Of a stretch of DNA of 64,000 bases, positions 12,189 to 40,399 are shown in pieces (within the stretch, counting starts at the first letter, position 1; every line of letters begins with the position of its first letter). The notes under the pieces were generated by a model. The model was not told the DNA's origin. It did no database searches and worked only from the letters and a program-made list of their open reading frames with translations. Source of the stretch: Macrostomum lignano. Its lineage: Eukaryota. The stretch covers positions 1,240,001 through 1,304,000 of the forward strand of contig NIVC01000059.1 in NCBI GenBank assembly GCA_002269645.1, written 5' to 3'. A program made the position numbers and the translations under genes.

Positions 12189-12222
<34 letters not shown>

Positions 12223-12904: not shown

Positions 12905-12938
<34 letters not shown>

Positions 12939-13004
12939 CTGTCTATCTATCTGCCTGTCCTGGTGTCTGTCTGTCTATTTTAGTGTCTGTCTGCCTATCT
13001 TAGT

Positions 13005-13038
<34 letters not shown>

Positions 13039-13224
13039 CTGTCTATCTATCTGCCTGTCCTGGTGTCTGTCTGTCTATTTTAGTGTCTGTCTGCCTATCT
13101 TAGTGTCTGTCTGTCTATTTTAGTGTCTGTCTGCCTATCTTAGTGTCTGTCTGCCTCTCTTAGTGTCTGTCTGCCTCTCTTAGTGTCTGTCTGCCTATCT
13201 TAGTGTCTGTCTGCCTATCTTAGT

Positions 13225-13258
<34 letters not shown>

Positions 13259-15256: not shown

Positions 15257-15529
15257 CTTGGAAACTATCTTCTTAACAACTCACGATTTTCCTTTGTAAA
15301 GTTTGTGTCATTTGTGTTGCTTGATTGTCTGTTTTTACCTACAAAATACATCTACGCCCAGCTGAGCATTTTATGCACTTCTCTGTTGACTAATAGTGAC
15401 ATTTACTAATAGTGACTAATAGTGGGCGTTAAAAATGGCGAGTACAATTGCTGTAAAGCATTTCTATGCAAATGATTTTCATCATTTATTATGCAGCCTC
15501 TAAAATTTCGTTGAGTCACACCCTCTTAG

Positions 15530-16690
15530 ATCCTCAGTTGCTTGGCCTCGAGCCTCCCAGATCCTCAGTTGCTGGGCCAGCCTCCCAGATCCTCAGTTGC
15601 TGGGCCAGCCTTCCAGATCCTCAGCTGCTGGGCCAGCCTCCCAGATCCTAAGTTGCTGGGCCGGCCTCCCAGATCCTCAGTTGCTGGGCCGGCCTTCCAG
15701 ATCCTCAGCTGCTGGGCCAGCCTCCCAGATCCTAAGTTGCTGGGCCGGCCTCCCAGATCCTCAGTTGCTGGGCCGGCCTCCCAGATCCCCAGTTGCTGGG
15801 CCAGCCTCCCAGATCCTCAGTTGCTGGGCCTCCAGCCTCCCAGATCCTCAGTTGCTGGGCCTCGAGCCTCCCAGATCCTCAATTGCTGGGCCTCGAGCCT
15901 TCCAGATCCTCAGTTGCTGGGCCAGCCTTCCAGATCCTCAGCTGCTGGGCCAGCCTCCCAGATCCTAAGTTGCTGGGCCGGCCTCCCAGATCCTCAGTTG
16001 CTGGGCCGGCCTTCCAGATCCTCAGCTGCTGGGCCAACCTCCCAGATCCTAAGTTGCTGGGCCGGCCTCCCAGATCCTCAGTTGCTGGGCCGGCCTCCCA
16101 GATCCCCAGTTGCTGGGCCAGCCTCCCAGATCCTCAGTTGCTGGGCCTCCAGCCTCCCAGATTCCCAGTTGCTGGGCCAGCCTCCCAGATCCTCAGTTGC
16201 TGGGCCAGCCTCCCAGATTCTCAGTTGCTGATCCCCAGTTGCTGGGCCAGCCTCCCAGATCCTCAGTTGCTAGGCCAGCCTCCCAGATCCCCAGTTGCTG
16301 GGCCAGCCTCCTAGATCCTAAGTTGCTGGGCCGGCCTCCCAGATCCTCAGTTGCTGGGCCAGCCTCCCAGATCCCCAGTTGCTGGGCCAGCCTTCCAGAT
16401 CCTCAGTTGCTGGGCCAGCCTCCCAGATTCTCAGTTGCTAGGCCAGCCTCCCAGATCCTCAGTTGCTGGGCCAGCCTCCCAGATTCTCAGTTGCTAGGCC
16501 AGCCTCCCAGATCCTCAGTTGCTGGGCCAGCCTCCCAGATCCTAAGTTGCTGGGCCAGCCTCCCAGATTCTCAGTTGCTGGGCCAGCCTCCCAGATCCTC
16601 AGTTGCTGGGCCAGCCTCCCAGATCCTAAGTTGCTGGGCCAGCCTCCCAGATTCTCAGTTGCTGGGCCAGCCTCCCAGATTCTCAGTTGC
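15530..16690. repeat. Minisatellite, ~28-bp unit (cagatcctcagttgctgggccagcctcc)
   Basis: Tandem array between the WBP4 3' end and the Mx copy A promoter. Confidence 0.95.
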
Positions 16691-17187
16691 TCTCGTTGAG
16701 TCATTTTCACTCACTCACCCACTCACTCACTCATTCACTCACTCACTCACACAATTACTCCATACATGAACCTTATCAACCATTCATTCAATAATACTGA
16801 AACAAGCATCAAAACATTGCTTAACGTCAGTTACGACTAGGGAAGGAATGGAAACAAAATCGTGTGTAGACAGACAGACCTTCTTAAGCATCTTAAAGCT
16901 TTGAGTAAAAATAACAGTTGATACAGATACACTATTGTCCAAGAGAAAAAATGATAATAATTTCCAAGAAATACCGCACGCCTTTTCTCTTGAACCTTGA
17001 AGCTTTTTAGTTAGAATCTAGGGTGTAATATTTAACAGAATGTTAAGCTATACGTTGCGGACGGCGGTCTGGGTGGAATAAATGTACGCATACTGTGCGC
17101 GCGTGCGTCTATTCATATGTACACTGTGCCGGAAAAGGGGTGGCAAGTGTCTGGGACCTGCCCGCCTGCCTGCCTGCCTCTGCCTAT

Positions 17188-17259
17188 CGTGGAATTTCCA
17201 AGAAATTCTTCTAAAAAGTCGACACCCAGCCAGATAGCACTTTGGAGAAGGCTTATAAA
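17188..17259 (+). promoter_or_regulatory. Putative Mx copy A promoter: kB-like GGAATTTCC overlapping GAS TTCCAAGAA, then TATAAA
   Basis: GGAATTTCC 17191-17199, TTCCAAGAA 17196-17204, TATAAA 17254-17259, ~110 bp before the ATG at 17370. A second TTCCAAGAA lies at ~16962-16970. Function is inferred from motifs only. Confidence 0.5.
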
Positions 17260-17369: not shown

Positions 17370-18518
17370 ATGAGCGAGGCTGATACGGCAAGGTAAGGTT
17401 AATTTAGGTTTTTTCTATTTATTTAACTTAACTAATCTACAACACACTTTATTTACGTCATACGTGTGCGACTGCCTGCATAAGATAGCATAGCAGCCAA
17501 GACTGCATAGCATATTCTATTTAATTTAAATATTGCATATTAAAAGTTTTAATTTGGAATTTAGGCCCCAATAATTCATCTTGAATAGTCCCAAATGATC
17601 CCAAATAGTCCCAGCTGATTCCAAATAGTCCCAGTTGATCCCAAATAGTTCCAGATGATCCCAAATAGTCCCAGTTGATCCCAAATAGTTTCAGATGATC
17701 CCAACAGTCCTAGCTAATTCCAAATATTCCCAGATGATCTCAAATAGTCCCAATATATCCCAAAATCACCCTAAATCCCAAACTAAACCCAAATCCTCCT
17801 ACATAGTCCCCAAAAATAAAACTCCAGAGCATTCTCCAATCTTCCTACCGCACTCGGAATCCCAGATCAACTTCAAAAATCCCAAGAAATCCCACCGAAC
17901 CCCCCCAACTCCCAGCCACATGAACGGCTCCGCCGTCGGTCCTGACGGTGACGGAGGCGACCAGCACGACGAGCTGCCGGCGCTGTCCTCGGCCTTCCGC
18001 CAGCGCATCCGGCCGGTGCTGAACCGTATCGACGAGCTGCGCTCCCACGGCCTGCAGAGCGACCTCAAGCTGCCCATGGTGGCGGTGGTGGGCGACCAGT
18101 CGGTGGGCAAGTCCTCGGTGCTGGAGGCCATCTCGGGCGTGGAATTTCCCCGCGGCACCGGCATGGTCACCCGCTGCGCCCTGCAGCTGTCCATGCAGTG
18201 GAACGCCGACCCTGAGGCGCCGTGGCACGGACGCATCAGCTACAAGGACGTCAACGGGCACAAGGTGGACAAGGAGCTCAACTCGCCTGGGGAAGTGGAC
18301 GGAGCCGTGAGGGAGGCCCAGCAGCGGATGACGCACGGAGACAATGAGATCTCGAGTGAGCAGATCGACCTGGCGATCAAGGGACCGGATGTTCCCGACC
18401 TGACCCTGATTGACCTGCCAGGCATCGCCAGGTGAGACGGACAGACAGACAGACACTAAGGCAGACAGACAGACACTAAGACAGACAGACAGACACTAAG
18501 ACAGACAGACAGACAGAA

Positions 18519-18603
<85 letters not shown>

Positions 18604-18622
18604 CTAAGGCAGACAGACACTA

Positions 18623-18667
<45 letters not shown>

Positions 18668-21600
18668 CTAAGACGGACAGACAGACGGACACTAAGACAG
18701 ACAGACACATTGGGCAAAAGAAACACGGGGACAAATCAGCACATATCATATCTCATATCAGATGAACGCAATGACCCCCGCACCCTCAGGTACTCTGCCA
18801 CAGGCGGTTCTGGCATCGCTCAGATCACCAAGTCGCTCATCGCCAAGTACGTCAGCCAGCCGCAGGTGCTCATCCTGGTGGTGGTGCCGTGCCACCAGGA
18901 CATCGAGACGGTCGAGGCGCTGTCACTGGCCAAGGAGGCCGACCCGCAGGGCGAGCGCACCATCGGGGTGCTCACGTGCCCGGACATGGTGAACAAGGGT
19001 GCGGAGCAGGAGACGCTGAAAATCGCCAACAACGAGAAGATCCCGCTGAAGAAGGGCTACGTGATGGTGAAGTGCCGCAGCCCCGAGGAGCTCAACAACG
19101 GCGTCACCCTGTCGGAGTCGGTGGCCAACGAGGCGGCCTTCTTCAAGACTCACCGGCACTTCAGCCTGCTGCCTGAGCAGTCCGTGGGCATTCGGACTCT
19201 GGCGGACAAGCTGACCGAGGAGCTGTTTGAGTCCGTGAAGAGGAACATCAGCACGCTGCAGAATGACATCCTGGTGAGGGAGTGAACAGGGATTCTTCAG
19301 AATTCTGGGTGTTCTGATCCCCAGGCTCTCGAGTGCTGAGGTCCTGATCCCCAGGCTCTCGAGTGCTGAGGTCCTGATCCCCAGACTCTCGTGTGCTGAG
19401 GTCCTGATCCCCAGACTTCTGTGTGCTGAGGTCCTGATCCCCAGACTCTCGTGTGCTGAGGTCCTGATCCCCAGACTCTCGTGTGCTGAGGTCCTGATCC
19501 CCAGACTTCTGTGTGCTGAGGTCCTGATCCCCAGACTCTCGTGTGCTGAGGTCCTGATCCCCAGGCTCTCGAGTGCTGAGGTCCTGATCCCCAGGCTCTC
19601 GTGTGCTGAGGTCCTGATCCCCAGACTCTCGTGTGCTGAGGTCCTGATCCCCAGGCTCTCGAGTGCTGAGGTCCTGATCCCCAGGCTCTCGAGTGCTGAG
19701 GTCCTGATCCCCAGGCTCTCGTGTGCTGAGGTCCTGATCCCCAGGCTCTCGAGTGCTGAGGTCCTGATCCCCAGGCTCTCGTGTGCTGAGGTCCTGATCC
19801 CCAGACTCTCGTGTGCTGAGGTCCTGATCCCCAGGCTCTCGAGTGCTGAGGTCCTGATCCCCAGACTCTCGTGTGCTGAGGTCCTGATCCCCAGACTCTC
19901 GTGTGCTGAGGTCCTGATCCCCAGACTCTCGTGTGCTGAGGTCCTGATCCCCAGACTTCTGTGTGCTGAGGTCCTGATCCCCAGACTTCTGTGTGCTGAG
20001 GTCCTGATCCCCAGGCTCTCGAGTGCTGAGGTCCTGATCCCCAGACTCTCGTGCGCTGAGCAGGGTTTCTGCTTACCTGGGTGTTGTAATCCCAGAGCCG
20101 TAAAGCCTAGGAAGTCCCCACGCCAGTGACTGTCAATTGTCTGTTCAGTGGTTCTCATATCAGTCCCGACACAGCTCACCTGCCCAGTCAAGCCGTCTCA
20201 TTCCCCAAAGCTCCACACGAGAGCCTCCCTGCCTGCCCCGCAGGAGATGCGCAAGAAGTTCCAGGAGGAGCTGCAGCGTCTCGGACAACCGGTCGCCGAG
20301 ACCAAAGACGAGAAACGGCGCTACCTGTTCGAGATGCTGAGCAACTTCAACAAAGACGTTGCCATAGCAACACAGGGCGAGATGAACGCCAGGTTTCACC
20401 TGTACGCCAAGTGCAGAAAGCACTGGACAGAGTTGGGGAAGCAGATTCATAGGGCTTGGCCAGGTAAGAAATTAGATGATAAACTGGGGCGTCTGGTTGG
20501 AGAAATAGAAAGGATGTTCATTATATTTTCAACACTGTTATATTCATGTGCTCAGGCTGGGTCACTCGCGGCCACATCTCGCACTATTGGCAGCCGCCCG
20601 AGCAGGTGACCCGACTAATAACAGACCTGCGAGGTCGCGAGCTCGCCTCCTACGATCACGTGTTCCCAATAATTGAACGAATCTACAAGGAGGAGTTTCT
20701 GAACAAACTGAAGCAGCCTGCGGAACAATTTTTGGAGCAGGTTGGATGATTTTGGTTTTATCGGGAAGCTGGGGGGTGGGGTGGCAGTCGTATGGGGTCG
20801 GCCGGTCCGTGAGAGTGGCGGGGAGGGTGGTAAGCGGTCCATGGGAATTAAGGGGCGTTGGTTTATGGGGTGCGGGTTAGCGGTCTATGTGCGAAAGTAT
20901 GGGGTTGGCGGGATTCTTTTGGCAATCGCAGCTCTATTAAAATGAAGTTTCCACAAAACCAAATCAATCAAGGTATCCGACGAGGTCACAGATGTGGTGC
21001 ACCTCATTGCCCAGAAGGTTTTTGGCGACTTCCAAGACATCTTCGAGGTGGTGACGGAGACCAGCAATGAGGAGATCGCCAAGGTGCTGGAGCTGGCCAG
21101 AGCGGATCTGAGCGGACGGCTGTTTCTTCAGGAGGCGCGAGTGTTCTCGCAGGACAGCCTGTTCCAGGAGCGCATTGCAAAGATTGAGGAGGATCTTTAC
21201 AAGAACAACAGCAACCAGCAGTGAGTGAAAATGATTACGTAACTGAAATTAGATGTAGAGATATTGATTAAGACAAGGCCTTGCAGCCCTAGAGAAATAC
21301 AGTTGCATGTACAAGAAGAGAGGGCAGATTGTCTGCAAATTAGCGATGACAAGACAGAAATTCAGAAGTGTGAGAGAGGGAGAGAGAGTTCTAGCCAGCT
21401 ATCAGCGCTGATGGTGGGGCAGAGGGACAGACTTCCAGCCAGCCAATCAGCGCTGATGGTAGGGCAGAGAGACAGACTTCCAGCCAGCCAATCAGCGCTG
21501 ATGGTGGGGCAGAGGGACAGACATCCAGCCAGCCAATCAGCGCTGATGGTGGGGCAGAGGGACAGACTTCCAGCCAGCCAATCAGCGCTGATGGTAGGGC

Positions 21601-22069
21601 AGAGGGACAGACTTCCAGCCAGCTAGTCAGCGCTGATGGTGGGGCAGAGGGACAGACTTCCAGCCAGCCAATCAGCGCTGATGATGGGGCAGAGGGACAG
21701 ACTGCCTGGCAGCCAATCAGCAACCGATCAGAAAATGCCAACCCAATCCCCGTCCGCAGGCCGCCCATCCCCGACAGCGCTGAGCGAATCCGCCGCGGTC
21801 TCGACGCCTACCTGCGGGTTGCCACTGAGCGACTGAGCGACACCATCCCGCAGTCCGTTCTCTACTTCATGTTCGACGTTGTTTCTAAGCAGCTCGGCAA
21901 CCGCGCCCTCGACCTGCTGTCCGAGTCCGAGTCTGCCGAGACGTTTCTGTCGCTGCTGCGTGAGCCGCGGCACAAAACTGCGAGAAGGAAACAGCTGAAG
22001 GAGATGCTGGAGCAGCTGCGGCTGGCGCAGCGGGACTTCAACAAGTTCCGGCTGGACGTGCAGGCTTGA
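17370..22069 (+). CDS. Mx: Mx-like dynamin-family large GTPase, copy A (short N-terminus), ~661 aa
   Basis: Exons 17370-17392, 17916-18431, 18790-19273, 20244-20463, 20556-20740, 20973-21220, 21760-22069 (1986 nt, phases consistent). G1 [20 protein letters not shown]2 [11 protein letters not shown]3 LIDLPG, G4 variant TCPD, middle-domain RGREL and a C-terminal GED. No PH domain or Drp1-type insert. AATAAA at ~22129. Confidence 0.9.
19311..20060. repeat. 30-bp VNTR in Mx copy A intron 3 (gtgtgctgaggtcctgatccccagactctc), ~25 units
   Basis: Tandem array; the inverted counterpart at ~28800-29426 is 4 units shorter. Confidence 0.95.
21400..21725. repeat. 45-bp CCAAT-containing tandem repeat in Mx copy A intron 6
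   Basis: Unit agccaatcagcgctgatggtggggcagagggacagacttccagcc, ~7 copies; related copies at ~26590-26700 and ~27370-27470. Confidence 0.9.
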
Positions 22070-22418
22070 GGTGTAATTGAGTCAGAAGCGGCTCAATTTT
22101 CTGTTGTAACGTCACTTGAAAACTTCTGAATAAACTCTATAAGAACTGGAATGCACTTTGGCTGGCTACCCCATTGTCGGTGCTTTTTCCGAAATTATGC
22201 AACAGTTTTTTTGTGTTTTTAGGCTTCTATTTCAGCTTATTGCCTATTTCTTAAGCTGTTGTGCCAACCAATAGTTCAGTGCTATCGAACTTTTAAGCGC
22301 CTGTGTGTCTCTTTGAATTACACTGTTCCAGTTTAAATTACAAAGATATTGGTCATTTTCAAATAATTCTGACAATGCGTTTTTATACTTCGTTTTTTAC
22401 TGAGGACACTGACGTGAT

Positions 22419-23988
22419 GGGCGGGGGGGCGGTTGTCACCGACTAGTGACTGACTGACTATGACTTTTCGGCGATCAGAACTCTCTCGGAGTCACGACAC
22501 GCTTGGTTGACGGTCTGGCAGGGTGTCCAATTGCTTAGAAATGAACTAAAACTTTGAAGAAGCTAAATTTAGCAACAGGCGGTCGTAAAGTCGAAAATAG
22601 AAAAGAGAATTAAGGTACGATAAACCGAGGCGAGGGCCAGACTTTATATTTAAAGTAATCAACTGGACCTCTACATCCGCCACGCGCACGGAGAGGCCTA
22701 AAATATCGATCGTGCTGCTCGTGCAAATACTATACGCTCTAAATAGATCGTACACACAACAGGAAAAGTAAAACGGCCCAATTGGGGGCAACTAAACGCA
22801 AAATTACATATATAAGAGGAAATAGGAATTAATACGATTTTTTGTCAGTTTATGCATAAATCAGACGCAGGGTGCTCAACAAAACGGCTCAAGGTGTTGA
22901 ATTTCCGCTTCTAGATACTCTGCAAGTCTTACGGTCAACGCGAAACAAGTAAAATAGTATATGTGTTAATGTGTACCCTTCATCAGCACAACCGCAGAAG
23001 TTGAAAATAGCCTTCAACGGACGTCGGTCTAAGTCCATGCAGCATCAGGTACATCCCCGCCGCTGGACTGGTCCCCTGAAAAGGCGGAGTTTCTTCAGCA
23101 GAAGGGCTCCAATACAGGCCCTTAATTCGACGAAGATCCGAGCGTGTCACTATAGGGATTAGGAATTAGCAAATAATAAGCGTCATTAAAAGGTCGTCAA
23201 AGGTAAAGCGAAAGTTAAAAGACTGGAAACAGAACTTAGAGATAAGACAGCTAAGTAAAAGAAATTAAAAGAACAGCTAGAAAGTGAAATAAATTATAGA
23301 TACGATAAGAAGTTAACTTTCACCTTTCCCCAAGATTTCAGACCAAGCGAGATAACATTAAAGTCAGCCGAGATACCAGGCAGAGTCAGTCGGCGCGGTG
23401 CCAGGAGAAGCGATACGGCAAGATACCCCGACTGGCGGGCGAGACAGAGCAATGGCCAACAGGCAAGGTCAGCGGTGATGTACGTGGATCTGCCCAGGGA
23501 GCAAAAGCACGACTCACCGAGGGATGCACGGGTGGTCTGACGTGCGAACAATATTCGAATACTGAACCCTGGACTGACCTTTAACCATCGCCTGATGCGA
23601 CCAACTAACAGATATCAAATTATCTCTCTCGCCCCGTAGCAACGCGCTAATCTAATGTTACTGCGTCTGTTCTGGCACCCCGCCGTTGCTAATCAGCGGC
23701 GGGGGATGACGTGTATCAAAAGATTTATAAAATAGACACGGCCTCGGCCCCGAAATGGGCAACGTGCGCAGAGACTTTAATTCTATAGCCTGGGCTCCAG
23801 TGAAGCTCACCAATAAATCTAAAGACTCATATTTGTTATTTGGGCTACAGGCACGAGTCATAAGCAGCCAAGTAGCGATCTCCTTTGTAAGCTCTCTTAG
23901 GCTTCGAGGACAGTGGAAGCAATAGAACAAACCGCTAGACGACCAAGAAAGAGAGAAGCATAGCCGGAGACCTAAGAGAAGTCTTACA
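22419..23988 (+). mobile_element. Probable Ty3/Gypsy 3' end: polypurine tract plus ~1.55-kb LTR (TGT...ACA)
   Basis: tgaggacac...gggcggggggggcggt (PPT-like, 22419-22432) directly precedes TGTCAC at 22434, and the segment ends TTACA at 23988. Internal TATA-like tttataaaa (~23724) and AATAAA (~23813). No TSD, second LTR or pol sequence is visible. Confidence 0.45.
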
Positions 23989-26330
23989 ACCAACAATCAA
24001 TCCACAAACTAGCATCACCAATCAATCCACAAATTAGCATCACCAATCAATCCACAAACTAGCATCACCAACAATCAATCCACAAACTAGCATCACCAAC
24101 AATAAATCCACAAACTAGCATCACCAATCAATCCACAAGCATCACCAATCAATCCACAAGCTAGCATCACCAATCAATCCACAAACTAGCATCACCAATC
24201 AATCCACAAACTAGCATCACCAATCAATCCACAAACTAGCATCACCAACAATCAATCCACAAACTAGCATCACCAACAATCAATCCACAAACTAGCATCA
24301 CCAATCAATCCACAAACTAGCATCACCAACAATCAATCCACAAACTAGCATCACCAACAATCAATCCACAAACTAGCATCACCAACAATCAATCCACAAA
24401 CTAGCATCACCAACAATCAATCCACAAGCTCGCATCACCAACCAATCCACAAGCTAGCATCACCAACAATCAATCCACAAGCTCGCATCACCAATCAATC
24501 CACAAACTAGCATCACCAACAATCAATCCACAAACTAGCATCACCAATCAATCCACAAACTAGCATCACCAATCAATCCACAAACTAGCATCACCAACAA
24601 TCAATCCACAAACTAGCATCACCAACAATCAATCCACAAGCTCGCATCACCAACCAATCCACAAGCTAGCATCACCAACAATCAATCCACAAGCTCGCAT
24701 CACCAATCAATCCACAAACTAGCATCACCAACAATCAATCCACAAGCTCGCATCACCAACCAATCCACAAGCTAGCATCACCAACAATCAATCCACAAGC
24801 TCGCATCACCAATCAATCCACAAACTAGCATCACCAACAATCAATCCACAAGCTCGCATCACCAATCAATCCACAAACTAGCATCACCAACAATCAATCC
24901 ACAAGCTCGCATCACCAACCAATCCACAAGCTAGCATCACCAACAATCAATCCACAAGCTCGCATCACCAATCAATCCACAAACTAGCATCACCAACAAT
25001 CAATCCACAAACTAGCATCACCAACAACCAATCCACAAGCTAGCATCACCAACAATCAATCCACAAGCTCGCATCACCAACCAATCCACAAGCTAGCATC
25101 ACCAACAATCAATCCACAAGCTCGCATCACCAATCAATCCACAAACTAGCATCACCAACAATCAATCCACAAACTAGCATCACCAACAATCAATCCACAA
25201 ACTAGCATCACCAATCAATCCACAAACTAGCATCACCAACAATCAATCCACAAACTAGCATCACCAATCAATCCACAAACTAGCATCACCAACAATCAAT
25301 CCACAAACTAGCATCACCAATCAATCCACAAACTAGCATCACCAACAATCAATCCACAAACTAGCATCACCAACAATCAATCCACAAGCTCGCATCACCA
25401 ACCAATCCACAAGCTAGCATCACCAACAATCAATCCACAAACTAGCATCACCAACAATCAATCCTCAAACTAGCATCACCAACAATCAATCCACAAACTA
25501 GCATCACCAACAATCAATCCACAAGCTCGCATCACCAACCAATCCACAAGCTAGCATCACCAACAATCAATCCACAAGCTCGCATCACCAATCAATCCAC
25601 AAACTAGCATCACCAACAATCAATCCACAAGCTCGCATCACCAACCAATCCACAAGCTAGCATCACCAACAATCAATCCACAAGCTCGCATCACCAATCA
25701 ATCCACAAACTAGCATCACCAACAATCAATCCACAAGCTCGCATCACCAATCAATCCACAAACTAGCATCACCAACAATCAATCCACAAGCTCGCATCAC
25801 CAACCAATCCACAAGCTAGCATCACCAACAATCAATCCACAAGCTCGCATCACCAATCAATCCACAAACTAGCATCACCAACAATCAATCCACAAACTAG
25901 CATCACCAACAACCAATCCACAAGCTAGCATCACCAACAATCAATCCACAAGCTCGCATCACCAACCAATCCACAAGCTAGCATCACCAACAATCAATCC
26001 ACAAGCTCGCATCACCAATCAATCCACAAACTAGCATCACCAACAATCAATCCACAAACTAGCATCACCAACAATCAATCCACAAACTAGCATCACCAAT
26101 CAATCCACAAACTAGCATCACCAACAATCAATCCACAAACTAGCATCACCAATCAATCCACAAACTAGCATCACCAACAATCAATCCACAAACTAGCATC
26201 ACCAACAATCAATCCACAAGCTCGCATCACCAACCAATCCACAAGCTAGCATCACCAACAATCAATCCACAAACTAGCATCACCAATCAATCCACTAGCA
26301 TCACCAATCAATCCACAAGCATCGCCAATC
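23989..26330. repeat. Satellite, 25/28-bp unit (accaacaatcaatccacaaactagcatc), ~2.3 kb
   Basis: Strongly strand-biased CA-rich tandem array in the spacer between the Mx copies. Confidence 0.97.
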
Positions 26331-26799
26331 AACCTACAAGCCTCGCCCCACAGGTCACAGAATCCTTTATACTAAAATGGTTTGTTGGTAAAAAGTAGCG
26401 TTTTCGTGTCAGCTGTTCTCGTGTGTATTTATGCAGCAAAACTCGTACATAGAATTTTTAAGTAAATATTTGCATATTTGCAGTGCTTTTATCATATTTA
26501 ATAAAAGGTGCAACAAACTATTTTATTCATTTTATCGATATTTCTTACACTGGCCGTCGGAGGAGGACATTAGCAGAGGGAATAACACAGAGACACGCCA
26601 GCCAATCAGCGCTGATGATGGGGCAGAGAGACAGACGGCCAGCCAGCCAATCAGCGATAATGATGGGACAGAGAGACAGACGGCCAGCCAACCATAGTGC
26701 TTTTAAGTTCTGATACCATTAATCCATAAATTTTGAATTGAGGAAACACAAAACCGACAAAGAAAAATTAGTACGATTTTTGTAAATAAAAAGTAACTT

Positions 26800-29700
26800 T
26801 TACAGCCTGAACTTGTTGAAGTCCCGCTGCGCCAGCCGCAGCTGCTCCAGCATCTCCTTCAGCTGTTTCCTTCTCGCAGTTTTGTGCCGCGGCTCACGCA
26901 GCAGCGACAAAAACGTCTCGGCAGTCTCGGACTCGGACAGCAGGTCGAGGGCGCGGTTGCCGAGCTGCTTTGAAACAACGTCGAACATGAAGTAGAGAAC
27001 GGACTGCGGGATGGTGTCGCTCAGTCGCTCAGTGGCCACCTGCAGGTAGGCTTCGAGACCGCGGCGAATTCGCTCAGCGCTGTCGGGGACAGGTGGTCTG
27101 CGGGCGGGGATTGGGTCGGCATTTTCTGATTGGTTGCAAATTGGCTTTTATCGTCGGTCCCTCTTCCCCACCGCCAGCGCAGCCTCTCTCTCCCTCTCTC
27201 TTTTAACTTTCTGCATGTCTGTCGCGTGTTTGGCGCTGATTTGAAGGCACGGTTTTTTCTTCTCTTGCGTGTTCTCTTCTCGATGCTTTTCTCTGTCGGG
27301 ACTGGACTGCAATTTTCAGGCGGGCGATTGGGTCGGAATCTAATGATTGTTTGCTGATTGGCTCTGATCGTTTGTCCGGACTGTCGCTCTGCCCCACCAT
27401 CAGCACTGATTGGCTGCCAGGAAGTCTGTCCCTCTGCCCCACCGCCAGCGCTGATTGGCTGGCTGGAAGTCTCTCTCCCTCTCTCACTCTTCTGACTTTT
27501 TGTCTTGTTGTTATCGCTAATAAGCAGACAATCTGCCCTCTCTTCTCGTACATGTAAGTGTATTTCTCTAGGGCTCATGGCCTTGTCATAATTAATAACC
27601 CTACACCTAATTTCAGTTACGTAACCAGTTCCACTCACTGCTGGTTGCTGTTGTTCTTGTAAAGATCCTCCTCAATCTTTGCAATGCGCTCCTGGAACAG
27701 GCTGTCCTGTGAGAACACTCGCGCCTCCTGAAGAAACAGCCGTCCGCTCAGATCCGCTCTGGCCAGCTCCAGCACCTTGGCGATCTCCTCGTTGCTGGTC
27801 TCCGTCACCACCTCGAAGATGTCTTGGAAGTCGCCAAAAACCTTCTGGGCAATGAGGTGCACCACATCAGTGACCTCATCGGATACCTTGATTGATTTGG
27901 TTTTCATGGAAACTTCATTTTAATAAAGCTGCGATTGCCAAAAGGATGCCGCCAACCCCATACTTTCGCATATAGACCGCTAACCCGCACCCCATAAACC
28001 AACGCCCCTTAATTCCCGTGGACCACTTACCACCCTCCCCACCACTCTCACGGACCGGCCGACCCCATACGACTTCCACCCCACCCCCCAGCTTCCCGAT
28101 AAAACCAAAATCATCCAACCTGCTCCAAAAATTGTTCCGCAGGCTGCTTCAGTTTGTTCAGAAACTCCTCCTTGTAGATTCGTTCAATTATTGGGAACAC
28201 GTGATCGTAGGAGGCGAGCTCGCGACCTCGCAGGTCTGTTATTAGTCGGGTCACCTGCTCGGGCGGCTGCCAATAGTGCGAGATGTGGCCGCGAGTGACC
28301 CAGCCTGAGCACATGAATATAACAGTGTTGAAAATATAATGAACATCCTTTCTATTTCTCCAACCAGACGCCCCAGTTTATCATCTAATTTCTTACCTGG
28401 CCAAGCCCTATGAATCTGCTTCCCCAACTCTGTCCAGTGCTTTCTGCACTTGGCGTACAGGTGAAACCTGGCGTTCATCTCGCCCTGTGTTGCTATGGCA
28501 ACGTCTTTGTTGAAGTTGCTCAGCATCTCGAACAGGTAGCGCCGTTTCTCGTCTTTGGTCTCGGCGACCGGTTGTCCGAGACGCTGCAGCTCCTCCTGGA
28601 ACTTCTTGCGCATCTCCTGCGGGGCAGGCAGGGAGGCTCTCGTGTGGAGCTTTGGGGAATGAGACGGCTTGACTGGGCAGGTGAGCTGTGTCGGGACTGA
28701 TATGAGAACCACTGAACAGACAATTGACAGTCACTGGCGTGGGGACTTCCTAGGCTTTACGGCTCTGGGATTACAACACCCAGGTAAGCAGAAACCCTGC
28801 TCAGCGCACGAGAGTCTGGGGATCAGGGCCTCAGCACACGAGAGTCTGGGGATCAGGACCTCAGCACACAGAAGTCTGGGGATCAGGCCCTCAGCACACA
28901 GAAGTCTGGGGATCAGGACCTCAGCACTCGAGAGCCTGGGGATCAGGACCTCAGCACACGAGAGTCTGGGGATCAGGCCCTCAGCACACAGAAGTCTGGG
29001 GATCAGGACCTCAGCACACAGAAGTCTGGGGATCAGGACCTCAGCACACAGAAGTCTGGGGATCAGGACCTCAGCACACGAGAGCCTGGGGATCAGGACC
29101 TCAGCACACGAGAGTCTGGGGATCAGGACCTCAGCACACGAGAGTCTGGGGATCAGGACCTCAGCACACAGAAGTCTGGGGATCAGGACCTCAGCACACG
29201 AGAGTCTGGGGATCAGGACCTCAGCACACGAGAGTCTGGGGATCAGGACCTCAGCACACGAGAGCCTGGGGATCAGGACCTCAGCACTCGAGAGCCTGGG
29301 GATCAGGACCTCAGCACACAGAAGTCTGGGGATCAGGACCTCAGCACTCGAGAGCCTGGGGATCAGGACCTCAGCACACGAGAGTCTGGGGATCAGGACC
29401 TCAGCACTCGAGAGCCTGGGGATCAGAACACCCAGAATTCTGAAGAATCCCTGTTCACTCCCTCACCAGGATGTCATTCTGCAGCGTGCTGATGTTCCTC
29501 TTCACGGACTCAAACAGCTCCTCGGTCAGCTTGTCCGCCAGAGTCCGAATGCCCACGGACTGCTCAGGCAGCAGGCTGAAGTGCCGGTGAGTCTTGAAGA
29601 AGGCCGCCTCGTTGGCCACCGACTCCGACAGGGTGACGCCGTTGTTGAGCTCCTCGGGGCTGCGGCACTTCACCATCACGTAGCCCTTCTTCAGCGGGAT

Positions 29701-30053
29701 CTTCTCGTTGTTGGCGATTTTCAGCGTCTCCTGCTCCGCACCCTTGTTCACCATGTCCGGGCACGTGAGCACCCCGATGGTGCGCTCGCCCTGCGGGTCG
29801 GCCTCCTTGGCCAGTGACAGCGCCTCGACCGTCTCGATGTCCTGGTGGCACGGCACCACCACCAGGATGAGCACCTGCGGCTGGCTGACGTACTTGGCGA
29901 TGAGCGACTTGGTGATCTGAGCGATGCCAGAACCGCCTGTGGCAGAGTACCTGAGGGTGCGGGGGTCATTGCGTTCATCTGATATGAGATATGATATGTG
30001 CTGATTTGTCCCCGTGTTTCTTTTGCCCAATGTGTCTGTCTGTCTTAGTGTCC

Positions 30054-30117
<64 letters not shown>

Positions 30118-31348
30118 TTCTGTCTGTCTGTCTGTCTTAGTGTCTGTCTGTCTGTCTTAGTGTCTGTCTGTCTGCCTTAGTGTCTGTCTGTCTGTCCGTC
30201 TCACCTGGCGATGCCTGGCAGGTCAATCAGGGTCAGGTCGGGCACATCCGGTCCTTTGATCGCCAGGTCGATCTGCTCACTCGAGATCTCATTGTCTCCG
30301 TGCGTCATCCGCTGCTGGGCCTCCCTCACGGCTCCGTCCACTTCCCCAGGCGAGTTGAGCTCCTTGTCCACCTTGTGCCCGTTGACGTCCTTGTAGCTGA
30401 TGCGTCCGTGCCACGGCGCCTCAGGGTCGGCGTTCCACTGCATGGACAGCTGCAGGGCGCAGCGGGTGACCATGCCGGTGCCGCGGGGAAATTCCACGCC
30501 CGAGATGGCCTCCAGCACCGAGGACTTGCCCACTGACTGGTCGCCCACCACCGCCACCATGGGCAGCTTGAGGTCGCTCTGCAGGCCGTGGGAGCGCAGC
30601 TCGTCGATACGGTTCAGCACCGGCCGGATGCGCTGGCGGAAGGCCGAGGACAGCGCTGGCAGCTCGTCGTGCTGGTCGCCTTCATCACCGTCAGGACCGA
30701 CGGCGGAGCCGTTCATGTGGCTGGGAGTTGGGGGGGTTCGGTGGGATTTCTTGGGATTTTTGAAGTTGATCTGGGATTCCGAGTGCGGTAGGAAGATTGG
30801 AGAATGCTCTGGAGTTTTATTTTTGGGGACTATGTAGGAGGATTTGGGTTTAGTTTGGGATTTAGGGTGATTTTGGGATATATTGGGACTATTTGAGATC
30901 ATCTGGGAATATTTGGAATTAGCTAGGACTGTTGGGATCATCTGAAACTATTTGGGATCAGCTGGGACTATTTGCGATCAGCTGGGACTATTTGGAATTA
31001 GCTAGGACTGTTGGGATCAGCTGGGACTTATCTGGGATCAGTTGGGACCATTTGGGATCAGCTGGGACTATTCGGGATAAGCTGGCTCACGAGTCTTGCA
31101 GCTCCTGGACACCCGACGGCGACGGCATCTGGATGTTGAGCTGCTCCTGAAGTGCCTCCTGAACATCAGGCTGTGCACCGCCGCTCGGACTGAGTAGTTC
31201 GCTGGGCGGTCTCGATTTCTTCTTTCGCTGGCGTCTGATAAAGCAAGTGCAGTGCAATTTTACAATAAATGACTGTGCAATACCCCACAAGTCTGAGTCC
31301 CAATGTAAGATCATGTTAATGCAATTACCTTGAAGTTTCCAGACTCAT
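26800..31348 (-). CDS. Mx: Mx-like dynamin-family large GTPase, copy B (extended basic N-terminus), ~704 aa
   Basis: Exons (minus) 31348-31329, 31234-31091, 30720-30205, 29950-29467, 28616-28397, 28304-28120, 27886-27639, 27097-26800 (2115 nt, phases consistent). The five internal shared exons are the same length as in copy A. N-terminus MSLETSRRQRKKKSRPPSELL...; C-terminus ends FNKFRL*. Confidence 0.88.
28800..29426. repeat. 30-bp VNTR in the matching intron of Mx copy B, ~21 units
   Basis: Reverse complement of the 19311-20060 array. Confidence 0.95.
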
Positions 31349-31452: not shown

Positions 31453-31508
31453 TTTTATAGTAGGCCAATGGGAGGGGGCTCCGCAATTTCCAAGAAATTC
31501 CACGTCAG
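31453..31508 (-). promoter_or_regulatory. Putative Mx copy B promoter: TGACGTG / kB-like / GAS element, CCAAT and TATAAAA
   Basis: Minus strand reads gctgacgtggaatttcttggaaattg (GAS at 31488-31496), then a CCAAT (plus strand, ~31465) and TATAAAA (31453-31459), ~105 bp before the ATG at 31348. Function is inferred. Confidence 0.5.
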
Positions 31509-32149
31509 CAGGGGATCAGTTGAAATGTATAGAGGCTGAGAGCAACTGTTCTTGAAAACAACGTACTTTTAATATAGTCAGTGTACAACTGAATCCTGCA
31601 TGTACAGAGGCTGAAACTGTCACAGCTTCTCCACGATAAGCAATTGAATTTAAACTGGACAAAATAAATTATTAGCTTATTCTCTGTCTGAATGTAAAGT
31701 CTCAAATTTGTAGCTCAATCAGACTGGAGACAGTAAGCATGTGAAGTTTGTCTGTTTTTTTTGGTTTTGGGCTGTCCACTCACTCATTTCCCCAGAAGGA
31801 TGCATAGGTCTCAGTGTACATGGCAACGTACAGTTTTTTGGAGCAACTTACCTTCATCTACGGCCTTTTCTGCATTGCCCCAGTGCGATGTACGCGCTAC
31901 GGGTAGCTAAGGACAGTTAACCGGACAGTGCATACAGATAATTGATGTCTCAAGGACCGCAGTAGTATAACAGGACGTAAAACTCAAAGATATTGTATTG
32001 TTTTTCGACGTCAATTTCCTGGGAAAAATGGACTGCAAAACAAGGAAAATATTTAAATTAATATTTAAAAAATAAACTTTTCACTACATAGCTCTATAAA
32101 ATAAAACAGCAACAACAAAATACTTTGTCAGTCAAGCAAGTCTTTAGAG

Positions 32150-34430
32150 GCAAAGACAATATTTGTCACAGGGTGCGGTTCAGGGCCTGGGTGCAAGCGA
32201 ACGTAGGCTGCACCGCCGGCAGTGATCGGGGCGCCGGCGTCAGCCAGCAGGCAGTCGACGAAACGCCGAGTGCACGCCTGTCCTCGCCAGTAGGGCGCCT
32301 GCAGCGTCAGCAGCGGCCACCAGCTGCGGGCAGTACGACTCCTCTAGCTGGAGACGTCGACGGCGCAACGTCAGCGGCGGCTCGAGCGAATCCGACAGCG
32401 TCCAGCAACAGACTGTGCAGCAGCACGGTCTCGATCACCGCCTGGAACAACGCCGCCCTCTGGCGGTCGGGCGGGGCCTCGGACTGCAGGACAGCCCATA
32501 GCTCACAGAACGGAAGGCAGCCCAGGCAAGTCCGCGGCGGCGTCGCAGATCCTCGCAAACGTCAGGCACCAGACCGCCGAGGTAGATGAACTACTGACAG
32601 CACGGAAGCTTCGTCACCTGTTCATCAGCGCCTCGGCAGAAAATTGCAGCCTCGATGTCGTCCGGCACGCAGAGCACGACGGTCTTCTGCGTGCTGACCA
32701 CCAGGCCGACACTCGCCGCAACGCTCACCAGCAGGTCCAGTTGTCGCTGGCCGCCGTTGACGGTCGAGGACAGCAGAGCGAGATCGTCGGCGTAGCCAAG
32801 CACGCTGAGCCGCCTCTCCGGTTGGCGTCGACCCACGCGTCGCTGCAGCAGGAAGCCGTTATCGTTAGAAGGGAGAGCAGTCCGCAGCACCCAGTCAAGC
32901 ACCAGGACGAACAGGAACGGCGCAAGCGTATCTCATTGAAGCAGCCTAAGAGGATGTCTTCAAGAAATCCGACAGGCCGTCCGGTGTTAGCACAGCATGT
33001 GCAATGATAGAGCGCCATGACGGCGGAAATCAGCTCCTCTGGCACGTTGTACGCACGAAGCACCATTGGGAGCACGGCCATCGCAACCAAGTCGAAAGCC
33101 TTCCTGAAGTCAATAAAGAGAGCAATCAGGTTCGACTGGCGGGCCCGGAGTCCCCAGGGCGAGCATCACAACGTCGGCTGTGCTGACTGGGGCTACATTA
33201 AAACTCTCCTCTGCCGACAACGGCGTCTCCGGCGGCAGCTTTAGATCGTTTGGCAGCAGGAGCGACGAAGAACTCGGGCAGCTCATTTCTGCGCTCATCC
33301 GGAGTGTCGCCAGCCAAGTTGAGTGGGATGCGCCGCTTCCGCCCCGTCAGGCGTTGATGGCGAAGCAGGCCACACGCCCTTTGGCGTCGGGTCCAGCGGC
33401 GGTGGGGGCTTGGATGGCGCCGTCAACAGCGGCTTGTTGCCGCTGCAGGTAGACAGCCGCCTGCTGAGACGGAGCCTCTTCAGCTCTGCCTTCGCTTGCC
33501 AAATCGCAGGGTCATCCAGCCAGACCGGCTGCCTATGTTGGGCCGGTTGCATCAGCGGGACTGCTTGCTCCGACGCGGCTGTAACCGCGGCACTTACCTG
33601 CGTGTACTCGGCGCGCCCGCACCTGTCACCAAGCGTGCTGAAGAAGGCGCTAGCGAAATAGCGATGCGCTAGGGTGTCCCTGAGCGCATGGTAGTAGCAC
33701 CGCGGTGGCCGCTTCGGCGGACGGTAAAGGAGATCACGCAGGTCGCAGACGAGGACCGCAGAGCCAGCGGCGTGATTGTGCGGAAGTTGACGGCGTGGTG
33801 GCGCTCACGAAGACGCACAAGCACGTGGTCGAGCTGTGCAGCCTGCCTCCGCGTCGCATTCCTCCGCCTCCGCTTGCAGCCCACGAAGGTCGCGAGCCTG
33901 CCGGGTGGCTTGCGAAAGCGGGTGTTGGCTGAAACCATGTCCTGCCTCTCCAGGAAGTCCTCCAGCGCTTCAGTCATGCCGTTCTCTCGCGGCGTTACAA
34001 ACAGCGACCGCTGGGACCTACGCAAAACCTTATTCAGGTCTCCGAGGTCGACCACTGTGTCACGCCGCGCCGTCTCCTCCACCTGGGCCGAGAGCTGCAT
34101 ACTCGAAGAAGTTTTGAGCCTCGTCAGGTCGGGTGGCAGGAGGCGCGTATGCGCAGAACAGGCGAGCGTTCAGGCCGCAAAGCCTGACGTCGACCCGAAG
34201 CAGCCGGTCAGACAAAGAGACGCAGCGACAGCTCTGCTGCAGCCTCGGTCCGATCAGCGCTCCAACTCCTCCATGGCCTCGCTGGTCCGCCGACGTGTAC
34301 CAGAGGGTCCAACCGGCGCCCGGGGTCCTCACAATGAATTCCCGGGTCGGTCCTGATGGACACTTGTTGCAGCGAGATGACATCGCATCTGAGGTCAAGC
34401 GTTGGCTGCGCCAGCAGCCGTCTCAGCCAG
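32150..34430 (-). mobile_element. Degenerate non-LTR retrotransposon (APE endonuclease plus reverse transcriptase, RTE-like)
   Basis: APE motifs GVGALI..RLL..CAYAP (34060-34398) and GDLN, NTRFRK, QLDHVL (33669-34100); RT motif LGYADDLALL (32591-32902); C-terminal LFQAVIETVLL (32307-32558). Broken by frameshifts and deletions. Clade assignment is tentative. Confidence 0.9.
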
Positions 34431-35150
34431 GCAGCCTTGAAATATAAAATACAACAGTCTAGCGTGCTTTGCATGCTAAATTAAAAGAATGGGGTAATCT
34501 TCACTGCCCCAGATCAAATCCTATTGTTGATTTTGTGGGGAAAGATTTTTTTCCTCTCTCCACAGTGTACTCATATTTTCCAAGAAATTGGACCCCCGAA
34601 AAATTACATGATCTTTGAGTTTTTACGAGCTTATGCGAAAAATCCGATATTCTGGTAAAAATTTTTAATATCTTGACTTGATTCTTGTTTGAGAAGGTGC
34701 GCAAAAACTTCGCCCGTTTTCCCCCCCTTCACCGGCCGTCTGATTTTTGGCAGCTTTTTAGTAAAATTGACGCTCAAATGACATTTGTCGCGTTTTAATA
34801 CTACTGCTGAGTACTGCAGCAGACATTTTTTGCCACGATAGTTTGGGATGCCTAAAATTGGAATTCTCCTTTGACAATTTCAATATAGAGCGGGCCGTTC
34901 TCTACGCAGTATAACAAATAATCGATTTAGCATATATAGTTGTAGAATCTCTGGTGTGTCTGTCCATGCAGTAAGATTTTATTAGACTATATGAAATCTG
35001 CCGAAGCAAACGCGTCGTTCCATGAATAATCTCAACACAGTACTCGCTCCAGCTGTGTGGTCTGTGGCTGCTGGCTGCCACTGCACACTAATTAAATAAC
35101 AAAATAAGATGTTGAATCCACGGCTACAAAAGCAGATTCTCTAATGAGAT

Positions 35151-35583
<433 letters not shown>

Positions 35584-39339: not shown

Positions 39340-39650
<311 letters not shown>

Positions 39651-39763
39651 AGTCATCAAACAGAAATCTGATAAAAGACAAGCCAAGCTCTTTCTTCCTC
39701 GGACTATCATTCTCTTTCTTGCTTTAATATTCCGTTTTTCGTCTTCTTTTTGAGAAGCAACCT

Positions 39764-40318: not shown

Positions 40319-40399
40319 GCTCTATACTCGGTTGCGCCGCTGACAATAAGTTAACAGCGCCCTCATTGCGTCTCTTGCTTAAATGCATTGTCTATATGG

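Follow-up and report, generated by a model that had tools for sequence, protein, structure and literature searches.

A tail-to-tail pair of Mx-clade GTPase genes in a palindrome of the flatworm Macrostomum lignano

A 64-kb stretch of Macrostomum lignano contig NIVC01000059.1 (the window) carries two genes for Mx-clade dynamin-like GTPases, placed tail-to-tail on the arms of a palindrome. Both genes are intact, are under purifying selection and have transcript-derived models, the transcript basis being annotation models, of which that for copy B at the window locus (PAA92269.1) begins inside an intron. A lineage-specific pair of such genes is probably the full explanation of the locus. The genes are already annotated and their Mx identity is already public; the palindrome, the new N-terminus of copy B and the STAT-like promoter element common to both genes appear to be undescribed so far.

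Two Mx-clade genes on inverted arms

Splice models in which every junction is GT-AG and in frame yield proteins of 661 and 704 aa, as a preliminary description of the locus had proposed (two intact genes of ~661 and ~704 aa), and the first exons and C-termini differ between the copies as stated there:

17370-22069, + strand: Mx copy A, 7 exons, 661 aa (splice model; Pfam; PDB sequence search)
17370-17392, 17916-18431, 18790-19273, 20244-20463, + strand: copy A exons 1-4 (splice model)
20556-20740, 20973-21220, 21760-22069, + strand: copy A exons 5-7 (splice model)
17370-17392, + strand: copy A-specific exon 1 (MSEADTA plus 2 nt), outside the repeat, present in transcript-derived PAA92268.1
22129-22134, + strand: first poly(A)-signal-like hexamer of copy A, starting 60 nt past the stop (consensus match only)
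26800-31348, - strand: Mx copy B, 8 exons, 704 aa, ending FNKFRL-stop (splice model)
31348-31329, 31234-31091, 30720-30205, 29950-29467, - strand: copy B exons 1-4 (splice model)
28616-28397, 28304-28120, 27886-27639, 27097-26800, - strand: copy B exons 5-8 (splice model)
31091-31348, - strand: copy B-specific exons 1 (31348-31329) and 2 (31234-31091), outside the repeat, encoding a 54-aa extension
26522-26527 and 26497-26502, - strand: poly(A)-signal-like hexamers of copy B (consensus match only)

GenBank already has the copy A model, residue for residue, as PAA92268.1 (BOX15_Mlig009769g1). PAA92269.1 (723 aa) is copy B too, but its modelled start is an ATG inside the intron at 30941. Both genes sit on a palindrome with the following parts:

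17584-22054, + strand: arm A (blastn and repeat detection versus arm B; four-way alignment)
26803-31052, - strand: arm B (blastn and repeat detection versus arm A; four-way alignment)
22055-26802, no strand: unique spacer, 4748 bp, containing the 3' UTRs of both genes
17584-17764, + strand: 20-bp minisatellite at the outer edge of arm A (arm B partner 30884-31085)
19314-20060, + strand: 30-bp minisatellite in copy A intron 3, 24.9 copies
28800-29426: 30-bp minisatellite, arm B partner, 20.9 copies

The measured arms (4.47 and 4.25 kb) and spacer bear out the earlier figures of a ~14-kb palindrome with ~4.3-kb arms and a ~4.7-kb spacer. By blastn and repeat detection the arms are 95-98% identical, internal minisatellites excluded, and the spacer holds a 2.3-kb, 28/53-bp minisatellite at 23989-26341. 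Homology had been said to stop at a 20-bp intronic repeat on the 5' side and at the stop codon on the 3' side. Its 5' edge is indeed the edge of the 20-bp minisatellite, and its 3' edge falls, within one codon, just past a CTG (Leu) codon, after which copy B has TAA at once and copy A reads GAC GTG CAG GCT TGA.

Both copies are Mx-clade GTPases, as anticipated for Mx-like proteins without a PH domain in an invertebrate, by several measures: firstly, Pfam finds Dynamin_N, Dynamin_M and GED in both genes and a PH domain in neither; secondly, a PDB sequence search gives ~350 bits over the full length to Mx2/Mx1 versus at most 169 bits for dynamin, Drp1 and Vps1; thirdly, the five best Foldseek matches of an AF2 model (pLDDT 77.7) are MxB and MxA; fourthly, in the dynamin-superfamily phylogeny suggested earlier as a check, a neighbour-joining tree of 308 G-domain columns, all 500 bootstraps set the dynamin-like outgroup apart, and 446 of the 500 recover an animal Mx group that includes Macrostomum. 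The Mx-type residues TRC, TxPD and RGREL are found in the Macrostomum copies, and the G4 motif is T-C-P-D, not T-K-x-D, in all 13 Macrostomum-type sequences. Mx membership is not new, because copy A (PAA92268.1) already stands inside the Mx clade, as one of six M. lignano members, in a published maximum-likelihood tree (Langley et al., PNAS 2025, PMC11789081).

A second locus and gene conversion between the arms

A second locus (L001) holds a 704-aa and a 661-aa gene, likewise tail-to-tail and with the same copy-specific ends. The two loci are collinear for ~23 kb, at a divergence of 4-17% by segment, and the spacer is kept at 84-91% identity. The Mlig_3_7 assembly is redundant and repeat-rich and the arms are almost identical over the core, features that would suit an artefact in which a single true gene was doubled through the collapse or misjoining of alleles or through a fold-back chimera in a long read. 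Such an artefact is nonetheless exceedingly improbable: the arms flank a 4.7-kb unique spacer, each has unique ends of its own (5' exons and stop context), A-type and B-type 5' exons occur each in separate transcript-derived models, and a second contig, 4-17% diverged, has the same arrangement, copy-specific ends and three type-specific residues. Misassembly as the source of the palindrome is thus largely refuted by a second diverged locus with the same pair, in line with the palindrome described earlier.

In a four-way alignment of the core, copies A and B are 99-100% identical in the window and 97-100% identical at the second locus, as compared to 93-98% between loci; over exons 2-6, dS is 0.013-0.024 within a locus versus 0.08-0.10 between loci. 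Within each locus the arms stand at 99-100% identity over about 3.3 kb, in introns as much as in exons. Five residues vary by locus and are common to both copies there, while three are type-specific (A versus B) at both loci and are the only core differences between the two proteins, whose cores are 99% identical. dN/dS is 0.03-0.24 in every comparison. As the arms are closer within a locus than to their orthologous arms, we conclude that they were homogenised by gene conversion, which spans the outer ~3.3 kb only; the inner ~1 kb beside the spacer escaped. The last exon and the copy-specific ends retain orthology between the loci: over the last ~270 bp the two A copies are 96% and the two B copies 95% identical, but A and B of the window only 81%. 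The duplication is therefore older than the split between the loci. Where the arms end on the 5' side may mark how far a conversion tract reached rather than where the original breakpoint lay.

Promoter elements and the probable derivation of copy B

GAS elements (TTCNNNGAA) are STAT binding sites, and GAS-like sequences lie upstream of both genes:

17188-17208, + strand: GAS-like palindrome CGTGGAATTTC-CAA-GAAATTC, centre ~172 bp upstream of the copy A ATG
16960-16972, + strand: second GAS-like core ATTTCCAAGAAAT, ~404 bp upstream of the copy A ATG
31484-31504, - strand: GAS-like palindrome CGTGGAATTTC-TTG-GAAATTG, centre ~146 bp upstream of the copy B ATG

These are the only three sites in the 64 kb, where 0.06 chance matches are expected, and the copy B palindrome is kept at the second locus (9852). 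Paralogue P0009 has two copies of the core upstream, the only ones in its locus, which gives five independent sites versus 0.19 expected in 122 kb. All five are found no more than 610 bp from the start codons of three Mx genes, roughly 140-600 bp upstream, and fit TTCYNRGAA inside a longer palindrome, ATTTC-NNN-GAAAT; the element was not found upstream of two truncated paralogues (L006, L007). A palindrome common to the promoters of A, B and a distant Mx paralogue would point to a joint regulator, STAT-type or similarly dimeric.

Copy B looks derived: an incomplete duplicate in inverted orientation, with a promoter and 5' exons added and the final four codons, which encode the C-terminal end of copy A, lost. 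We hold with good confidence that the A type is ancestral, that the inverted duplication preceded the split of the loci, and that copy B recruited its stop, promoter and two 5' exons. A 4.5-kb piece of an A-type gene, beginning in intron 1 and ending at the fifth codon ahead of the stop, would have been copied in inverted orientation 4.7 kb downstream; the new copy would have drawn its stop codon from the adjoining spacer, and unrelated sequence upstream would have supplied the promoter and two short 5' exons, spliced in frame. The single outgroup sequence that polarises the ends (P0002) closes with FNKFRLDIG, an A-like tail, and has a short, non-basic N-terminus; the basic extension is absent from it and from all other paralogues compared. 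No homology was detected between the 5' flanks of A and B (Smith-Waterman 25 versus a null of 21.5 ± 2.2), consistent with the distinct promoters already proposed. The further proposal that one copy gained its promoter and N-terminus by recruitment is most likely right, that copy being B.

An old full-length duplication, with ancient promoters and first exons, arms that mark the reach of recurrent conversion, and ends that simply diverged, would draw on the demonstrably active conversion, on first exons that are both phase-2 mini-exons starting ATGAG and ending CAAG/GTAA, and on an element common to both promoters (18 of 21 nt) at a similar distance from the start codon. It is improbable, however, as the unconverted last exon sets the A/B split at dS ~0.10-0.11, at which the flanks should be ~85% identical, yet they are dissimilar beyond the element, and the 3' homology breaks off so abruptly. 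Moreover, the extended element TGGAATTTCTTGGAAAT also lies upstream of a paralogue just 41-46% identical; its likeness therefore reflects binding-site constraint, not common ancestry.

Recruitment, the preferred reading, would have given copy B an extension in which RRQRKKKSR has K/R at seven of nine positions, a cluster found in the B type alone among 11 Macrostomum-type proteins compared; the AF2 model shows residues 1-73 as disordered. Exon 2 has its donor 6 bp clear of the boundary minisatellite (array end 31085) and 39 bp clear of detectable arm homology (31052), on the outer side of both. Transferring the exon structure of copy B to the second locus gives PAA61830.1 exactly, and because this orthologous model has the two 5' exons, we infer that they are in use at the window locus. 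It is rather unlikely that these exons are 5' UTR and that both genes start at an internal common ATG. In that case the two proteins would be nearly identical, and two promoters would supply essentially one protein from a dosage or regulatory duplicate. An in-frame ATG does lie two codons into the first common exon (..SHMNGS..), just the three type-specific residues separate the cores, and the deposited PAA92269.1 skips the upstream exons; but the frame from the upstream ATG keeps phase through two splice junctions, PAA61830.1 translates it, and between loci the extension shows six synonymous and three non-synonymous changes (small numbers) with the basic cluster untouched.

Possible roles and comparison with known systems

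In planarians, mx1 and stat5 homologues rise together, with RLRs, in the response to dsRNA (PMC8797187). Family membership and these indirect expression data suggest an antiviral role, and we lean towards A and B as GTP-dependent, self-assembling restriction factors in an inducible antiviral-type response that a single regulator, STAT-type or similarly dimeric, would control. Interferon is not expected as the inducer in M. lignano, since the Mx family is older than the interferon system (Langley et al., PMC11789081). Housekeeping GTPases of the Mx clade that remodel membranes in organelle or vesicle dynamics have little probability: dynamin, Drp1 and OPA1 are encoded by genes of their own in M. 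lignano, and the turnover of its Mx family, which counts six genes or more, follows a pattern typical for genes of defence (PMC11789081); the planarian mx1 is induced with RLRs and stat5; and the promoters contain GAS-like elements. In favour of housekeeping, no flatworm Mx is known to be antiviral, the strong purifying selection is unlike the arms-race signature frequent in Mx, and the Mx-like lineage is ancient and, according to PMC11789081, uncharacterised in function beyond vertebrates. The two-compartment arrangement raised in the preliminary description is suggested by the seven-of-nine K/R cluster in a predicted disordered extension; only tentatively might this extension direct B to another compartment than A (nucleus or nuclear envelope).

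Like vertebrate Mx1/MxA and Mx2/MxB, the Macrostomum copies have a G domain, BSE and stalk without PH domain or PRD, and they align end to end with the solved MxA and MxB structures. One Macrostomum paralogue differs from the other by a longer N-terminus, disordered and basic, as MxB differs from MxA. Identity to vertebrate Mx is just 35-38%, however, the vertebrate G4 Lys is Cys, and the tail-to-tail, palindromic arrangement is unlike the vertebrate pair. Copies A and B are mutual closest relatives (200/200 bootstraps), so their recent, flatworm-specific duplication is not orthologous to the mammalian split; the sizes earlier set beside MxA (662) and MxB (715) stand, but the parallel is coincidental. 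Vertebrate Mx promoters are driven mainly via ISRE elements, not GAS, whereas the Macrostomum candidates are GAS-like. Flatworm STAT is known only from the planarian report (PMC8797187).

Langley et al. include copy A in alignments and trees; the accessible supplement text was not found to list PAA92269.1 (copy B) or the second-locus pair (PAA61830.1, PAA61827.1), and the accessible part has no mention that we found of the palindrome, alternative N-terminus, gene conversion or promoter elements (PMC11789081).

The Mx locus shares inverted arms, a unique spacer and one gene per arm with the ampliconic palindromes of primate sex chromosomes. Those are gene-bearing palindromes maintained by arm-to-arm gene conversion, and in both systems the arms resemble each other more than they resemble their orthologues elsewhere. 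The Mx locus differs in being tiny, with 4.5-kb arms, in the restriction of conversion to the outer ~3.3 kb, and in arms that are not whole genes, each gene having unique exons outside the repeat.

An inverted pair of Mx genes

Most of each of two genes in the window lies in one half of a long inverted repeat:

17370-22069, + strand, Mx gene copy A
26800-31348, - strand, Mx gene copy B
17584-22054, arm A of the inverted repeat
31052-26803, arm B of the inverted repeat

Repeat search and blastn aligned the two arms at 95-98% identity, internal minisatellites left out, with a spacer of 4748 bp separating them. Reading open reading frames and splice sites gave complete GT-AG models for both genes: copy A has 7 exons and a product of 661 aa, and copy B has 8 exons and a product of 704 aa that ends in FNKFRL*. 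Across the 649 codons in common we counted 5 amino-acid and 17 synonymous codon differences, none of which falls in the three identical central exons (889 nt). The outer limit of arm homology coincides with the edge of a 20-bp minisatellite, while the inner limit falls after a Leu codon, followed directly in copy B by TAA. The ~14-kb tail-to-tail palindrome with two intact genes that had been proposed in a preliminary description was borne out by the repeat search, blastn and the GT-AG models, and the sizes, first exons, C-termini and boundaries given there all held when re-derived.

The window carries a very high load of minisatellites (11686-14887, 15528-16691, 23989-26341, 35153-35583, 36348-38078, 39260-39700 and 40362-40824), which accounts for its strong composition-profile skews. 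A 20-bp unit repeated 152 times (3 kb) and an array of a 28-bp unit lie immediately upstream of copy A, half of the spacer is taken up by a 28/53-bp array, and the window also has a perfect (TCTA)x108 array. Copies of a 45-bp minisatellite of the last intron flank the last exon of copy B in inverted orientation (26597-26694, +; 27381-27472, -) and recur at 21385-21721; one of them sits in the spacer, just past the copy B stop codon. These copies hint that the inner boundary was rearranged in a more complex way. Elsewhere in the window, an open reading frame at 54461-55246 (-) encodes a partial protein-kinase domain (Pkinase, E=1e-8) and is presumably an exon of an adjoining kinase gene.

Several lines of evidence place both proteins in the Mx family. 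Pfam returned Dynamin_N (E=3e-38), Dynamin_M (E=7e-41) and GED (E=1.5e-14), with no match to a PH or proline-rich domain in the proteins. In a sequence search against all solved structures, MxB and MxA scored ~350 bits over the full length, as compared to at most 169 bits for dynamin, Drp1 and Vps1, and the alignment to MxB spanned query residues 82-697 without a large insertion. The AlphaFold2 prediction for the B-type protein (mean pLDDT 77.7) shows long helices spanning residues 361-703, and its five best Foldseek matches were MxB and MxA, all full-length (E=1e-33 to 1e-28). We built a neighbour-joining tree from 50%-identity representatives of an exhaustive search, using 308 G-domain columns and labelling clades by their best solved-structure match. 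The dynamin/Drp1-like outgroup split off in 500/500 bootstraps; animal Mx, with all Macrostomum sequences among them, was recovered in 446/500. The proteins thus fall inside the Mx clade and not with dynamin, Drp1, Vps1 or OPA1.

The GTPase motifs of copies A and B agree with this assignment: G1 is GDQSVGKSS, switch I is GMVTRC, G3 is DLPG and G4 is LTCPD. At the switch I position that reads TRR in the dynamin-like group, Macrostomum Mx have TRC; their G4 contains T-x-P-D and their stalk RGREL. Pfam and this motif comparison both match the earlier account of proteins with Mx-type G1, G3, RGREL and GED but no PH domain. The G4 Lys is replaced by Cys in 13/13 Macrostomum-type Mx compared, with the Asp kept; this position is Arg in Owenia and Lys in all other named Mx compared. 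The G4 codons are:

18971-18985, + strand, LTCPD of copy A
29755-29769, - strand, LTCPD of copy B

Membership of copies A and B in the Mx subfamily is thus confirmed at the level of sequence, and it is already public, because the copy A protein (PAA92268.1) falls within the Mx clade of a published ML tree (Langley et al., 2025, PMC11789081). The same work describes the Mx family as older than interferon; in its searched parts, copy B, the genes of the second locus described below and the genomic arrangement are absent (PMC11789081). In a search of the literature, no paper mentioned any of the four gene IDs. One candidate for a closer paralogue, P0003 (UniRef A0A1I8FD45, 'WW domain-containing protein'), was rejected: it is the same Mx gene, in a model full of frameshifts that stems from an older M. 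lignano assembly.

The protein of our copy A model is identical to the M. lignano GenBank record PAA92268.1 (BOX15_Mlig009769g1), annotated on the 1.49-Mb contig NIVC01000059.1 of assembly GCA_002269645.1. Since the annotation of this assembly was built only from RNA-seq-derived transcripts and TransDecoder ORFs (PMC5730564), the copy A-specific first exon has transcript support. Copy B is deposited as PAA92269.1 (723 aa), which differs from our model only at the start: it begins at an ATG at 30941 within an intron and reads through to the first shared exon (30721-30941, -). Its orthologue PAA61830.1 uses the two upstream exons and has 704 aa. Carrying the copy B exon structure over to the second locus, L001 (contig NIVC01001994.1), reproduced PAA61830.1 exactly, which provides transcript-level support at this sister locus for the two B-specific 5' exons. 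The PAA92269.1 start is probably an annotation error or a retained-intron transcript, and we correct the public record in that this model appears to start within an intron. An in-frame ATG two codons inside the first shared exon is present in both genes and could serve as a start for both, in which case their products would be nearly the same.

Concerted evolution at two loci

L001 is collinear with window positions 40898-17686 at 83-96% identity and holds a tail-to-tail pair of its own, PAA61830.1 (704 aa) and PAA61827.1 (661 aa). A palindrome created by misassembly was therefore rejected, the same inverted pair being found on contig NIVC01001994.1. L001 may be a homeologue or a diverged haplotype; the assembly is redundant owing to an extra large chromosome of the sequenced line (PMC5730564). 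Intron 1 of the A-type gene measures 523 bp in the window but exceeds 2.9 kb in L001 (21266-24211), where an 851-aa gene call without a Pfam match lies within it on the opposite strand; the added length is probably an insertion specific to L001. Three further Mx paralogues (P0009, P0017 and P0018) are single genes, with no inverted partner within 6-10 kb of flank per side.

To compare the two pairs, we aligned window A, window B, L001 A and L001 B. In the core (~17800-21100) the arms of one locus are 99-100% identical to each other in the window and 97-100% in L001, as compared to 93-98% between loci, introns and exons alike. Synonymous divergence in exons 2-6 follows the same pattern (dS 0.013-0.024 within a locus, 0.08-0.10 between loci), and five amino-acid differences are locus-specific, common to both copies of each locus. 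Paralogous arms are thus closer than orthologous arms in both core identity and dS, as in concerted evolution. By contrast, over the last ~270 bp toward the spacer, A-A identity is 96% and B-B 95%, with A-B at only 81%, and three residues (I562V, D574E and R578Q, copy A numbering) are type-specific in both loci. Because this segment and these residues follow type and not locus, the A/B duplication is older than the split of the loci. In the unconverted last exon, A/B dS is ~0.10-0.11. Together, these alignments indicate that the outer ~3.3 kb of the arms has been homogenised by gene conversion, independently per locus, since the split. All pairwise dN/dS values lie between 0.03 and 0.24, indicating purifying selection on all four genes.

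Origin of the copy B 5' end

Beyond one short element, the 5' flanks of the repeat show no homology between copies A and B (Smith-Waterman score 25, as compared to 21.5+-2.2 for shuffled sequence). At an A/B split of dS ~0.10-0.11 homologous flanks should still be recognisable; none are. The nearest outgroup protein, P0002, known from the intronless RNA contigs L002 and L003, has 671 aa, is 68% identical, ends in FNKFRLDIG and has a short, non-basic, A-like N-terminus. The 54-aa N-terminal extension of copy B holds RRQRKKKSR, with 7 K/R in 9 residues, a dense basic cluster found in copy B only among the 11 Macrostomum-type proteins compared; copy A and nine relatives have at most 4 K/R. Residues 1-73 of the copy B-type protein are predicted by AlphaFold to be disordered. 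Between the two loci, the extension differs by 6 synonymous and 3 non-synonymous substitutions, with the basic cluster intact.

We read copy B as the derived copy because its flanks are non-homologous, P0002 ends as copy A does, the basic cluster is confined to copy B, and the last exon has the dS given above. Copy B would then have begun as an inverted duplicate of only part of a gene, from intron 1 up to the fifth codon ahead of the stop, and would have taken its stop codon, promoter and two 5' exons from the sequence around it. The splice donor of the second B-specific exon sits 6 bp outside the boundary minisatellite, and both new 5' junctions of copy B are in phase 2, as in copy A. The earlier proposal that one copy gained a new promoter and N-terminus by exon recruitment is therefore supported, as an inference, by the flank, outgroup and basic-cluster evidence.

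The 74-aa copy B N-terminus found no homologue in a search that also missed the identical PAA61830.1 and so has no bearing on where the extension came from. The 5' end of the outgroup transcript L002 matched the first exons of A and B no better than shuffled sequence did. A retroelement LTR as the source of the copy B promoter and first exons was dropped, since we detected only a sub-threshold RVT_1 fragment; no long terminal repeats were found near the copy B 5' region, and neighbouring ORF fragments had no Pfam match. The RVT_1 fragment (32591-32902, -; 23.5 bits, Pfam cut-off 29.6) is short and degenerate, shares the strand of copy B and lies ~1.2 kb upstream of it. Its coding remnants are spread over several frames, and it sits inside a GC-rich block (~32100-34900) that is also present in L001 at 83-91% identity.

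A shared promoter element and comparison with vertebrate Mx

The sole similarity between the 5' flanks of copies A and B is a palindromic, GAS-like element:

17188-17208, GAS-like palindrome CGTGGAATTTC-CAA-GAAATTC, centre ~172 bp upstream of the copy A ATG
31504-31484, GAS-like palindrome CGTGGAATTTC-TTG-GAAATTG, centre ~146 bp upstream of the copy B ATG
16960-16972, second core ATTTCCAAGAAAT, ~404 bp upstream of the copy A ATG

Searching for GGAATTTCNNNGAAATT with one mismatch allowed gave 3 sites in the 64 kb, with 0.06 pattern matches expected by chance. The copy B site is conserved in L001 (9852-9866), and the 13-bp core occurs twice upstream of the ATG of P0009, a distant Mx paralogue (~336 and ~600 bp; 9395-9407 and 9659-9671 of L004, its locus) and nowhere else in the 24.5 kb of L004; one of these sites has 17 nt in common with the copy B site. 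Over 122 kb of independent sequence we thus found 5 sites, as compared to 0.19 expected, all at most 610 bp upstream of three Mx ATGs. No GAS-like element was found at two loci with truncated paralogues (L006 and L007). The five sites all conform to TTCYNRGAA, the consensus of GAS type to which STAT dimers bind, inside a longer palindrome, ATTTC-NNN-GAAAT; the TTCNNNGAA palindrome expected of a STAT/GAS-regulated promoter is present near these gene starts more often than by chance. In Schmidtea, homologues of mx1 and stat5 rise with RIG-I-like receptors upon ADAR knockdown (PMC8797187). Given the fit to the consensus and this co-rise in planarians (PMC8797187), STAT-type input to flatworm Mx genes through the GAS-like element is plausible.

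Both genes, like their assignment to Mx, are already in the public record. What appears to be new is the palindrome with its gene conversion, the N-terminus captured by copy B and the GAS-like element common to the promoters; these can be tested in M. lignano, for which transgenesis and RNA-seq resources exist. Mx proteins are known from textbooks as effectors of interferon, and a pre-interferon Mx raises two questions: what turns Mx on in an animal that lacks interferon, and by what route Mx proteins gain new specificities. For both, the locus is a compact case. Because gene conversion keeps the rest of the protein identical, any functional difference between A and B must map to ~60 residues, and the GAS-like palindrome in unrelated promoters of three Mx genes is a concrete candidate lead to an upstream regulator. 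The locus leaves the understanding of Mx proteins unchanged, and is a useful example rather than a surprise.

The observations of the preliminary description stand, and its interpretation is supported in part: Mx identity and a real gene pair are confirmed, and exon recruitment is probable. The antiviral role proposed there is putative, and the planarian co-rise of mx1 (PMC8797187) bears only indirectly on induction in a dsRNA response. Its parallel with human MxA and MxB fares differently. The sizes (661 and 704 aa) are correct, but the resemblance in size is coincidental: copies A and B group as sisters (200/200 bootstraps) within a clade of Macrostomum sequences only (200/200), and are thus not orthologous to the two sides of the mammalian Mx1/Mx2 split, any likeness to which is convergent. 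The one feature that might suggest two compartments is the basic cluster. We regard as unlikely the far-reaching reading in which flatworm Mx genes are direct STAT-type targets via TGGAATTTC-NNN-GAAAT, on an interferon-independent axis older than vertebrate interferon, and in which the palindrome is convergently MxA/MxB-like, gene conversion keeping the GTPase core the same in both genes and a newly captured, disordered, basic N-terminus directing one of the two proteins to the nucleus or nuclear envelope. What the M. lignano copies do have in common with MxA and MxB is that they differ by an N-terminal extension with a basic motif.
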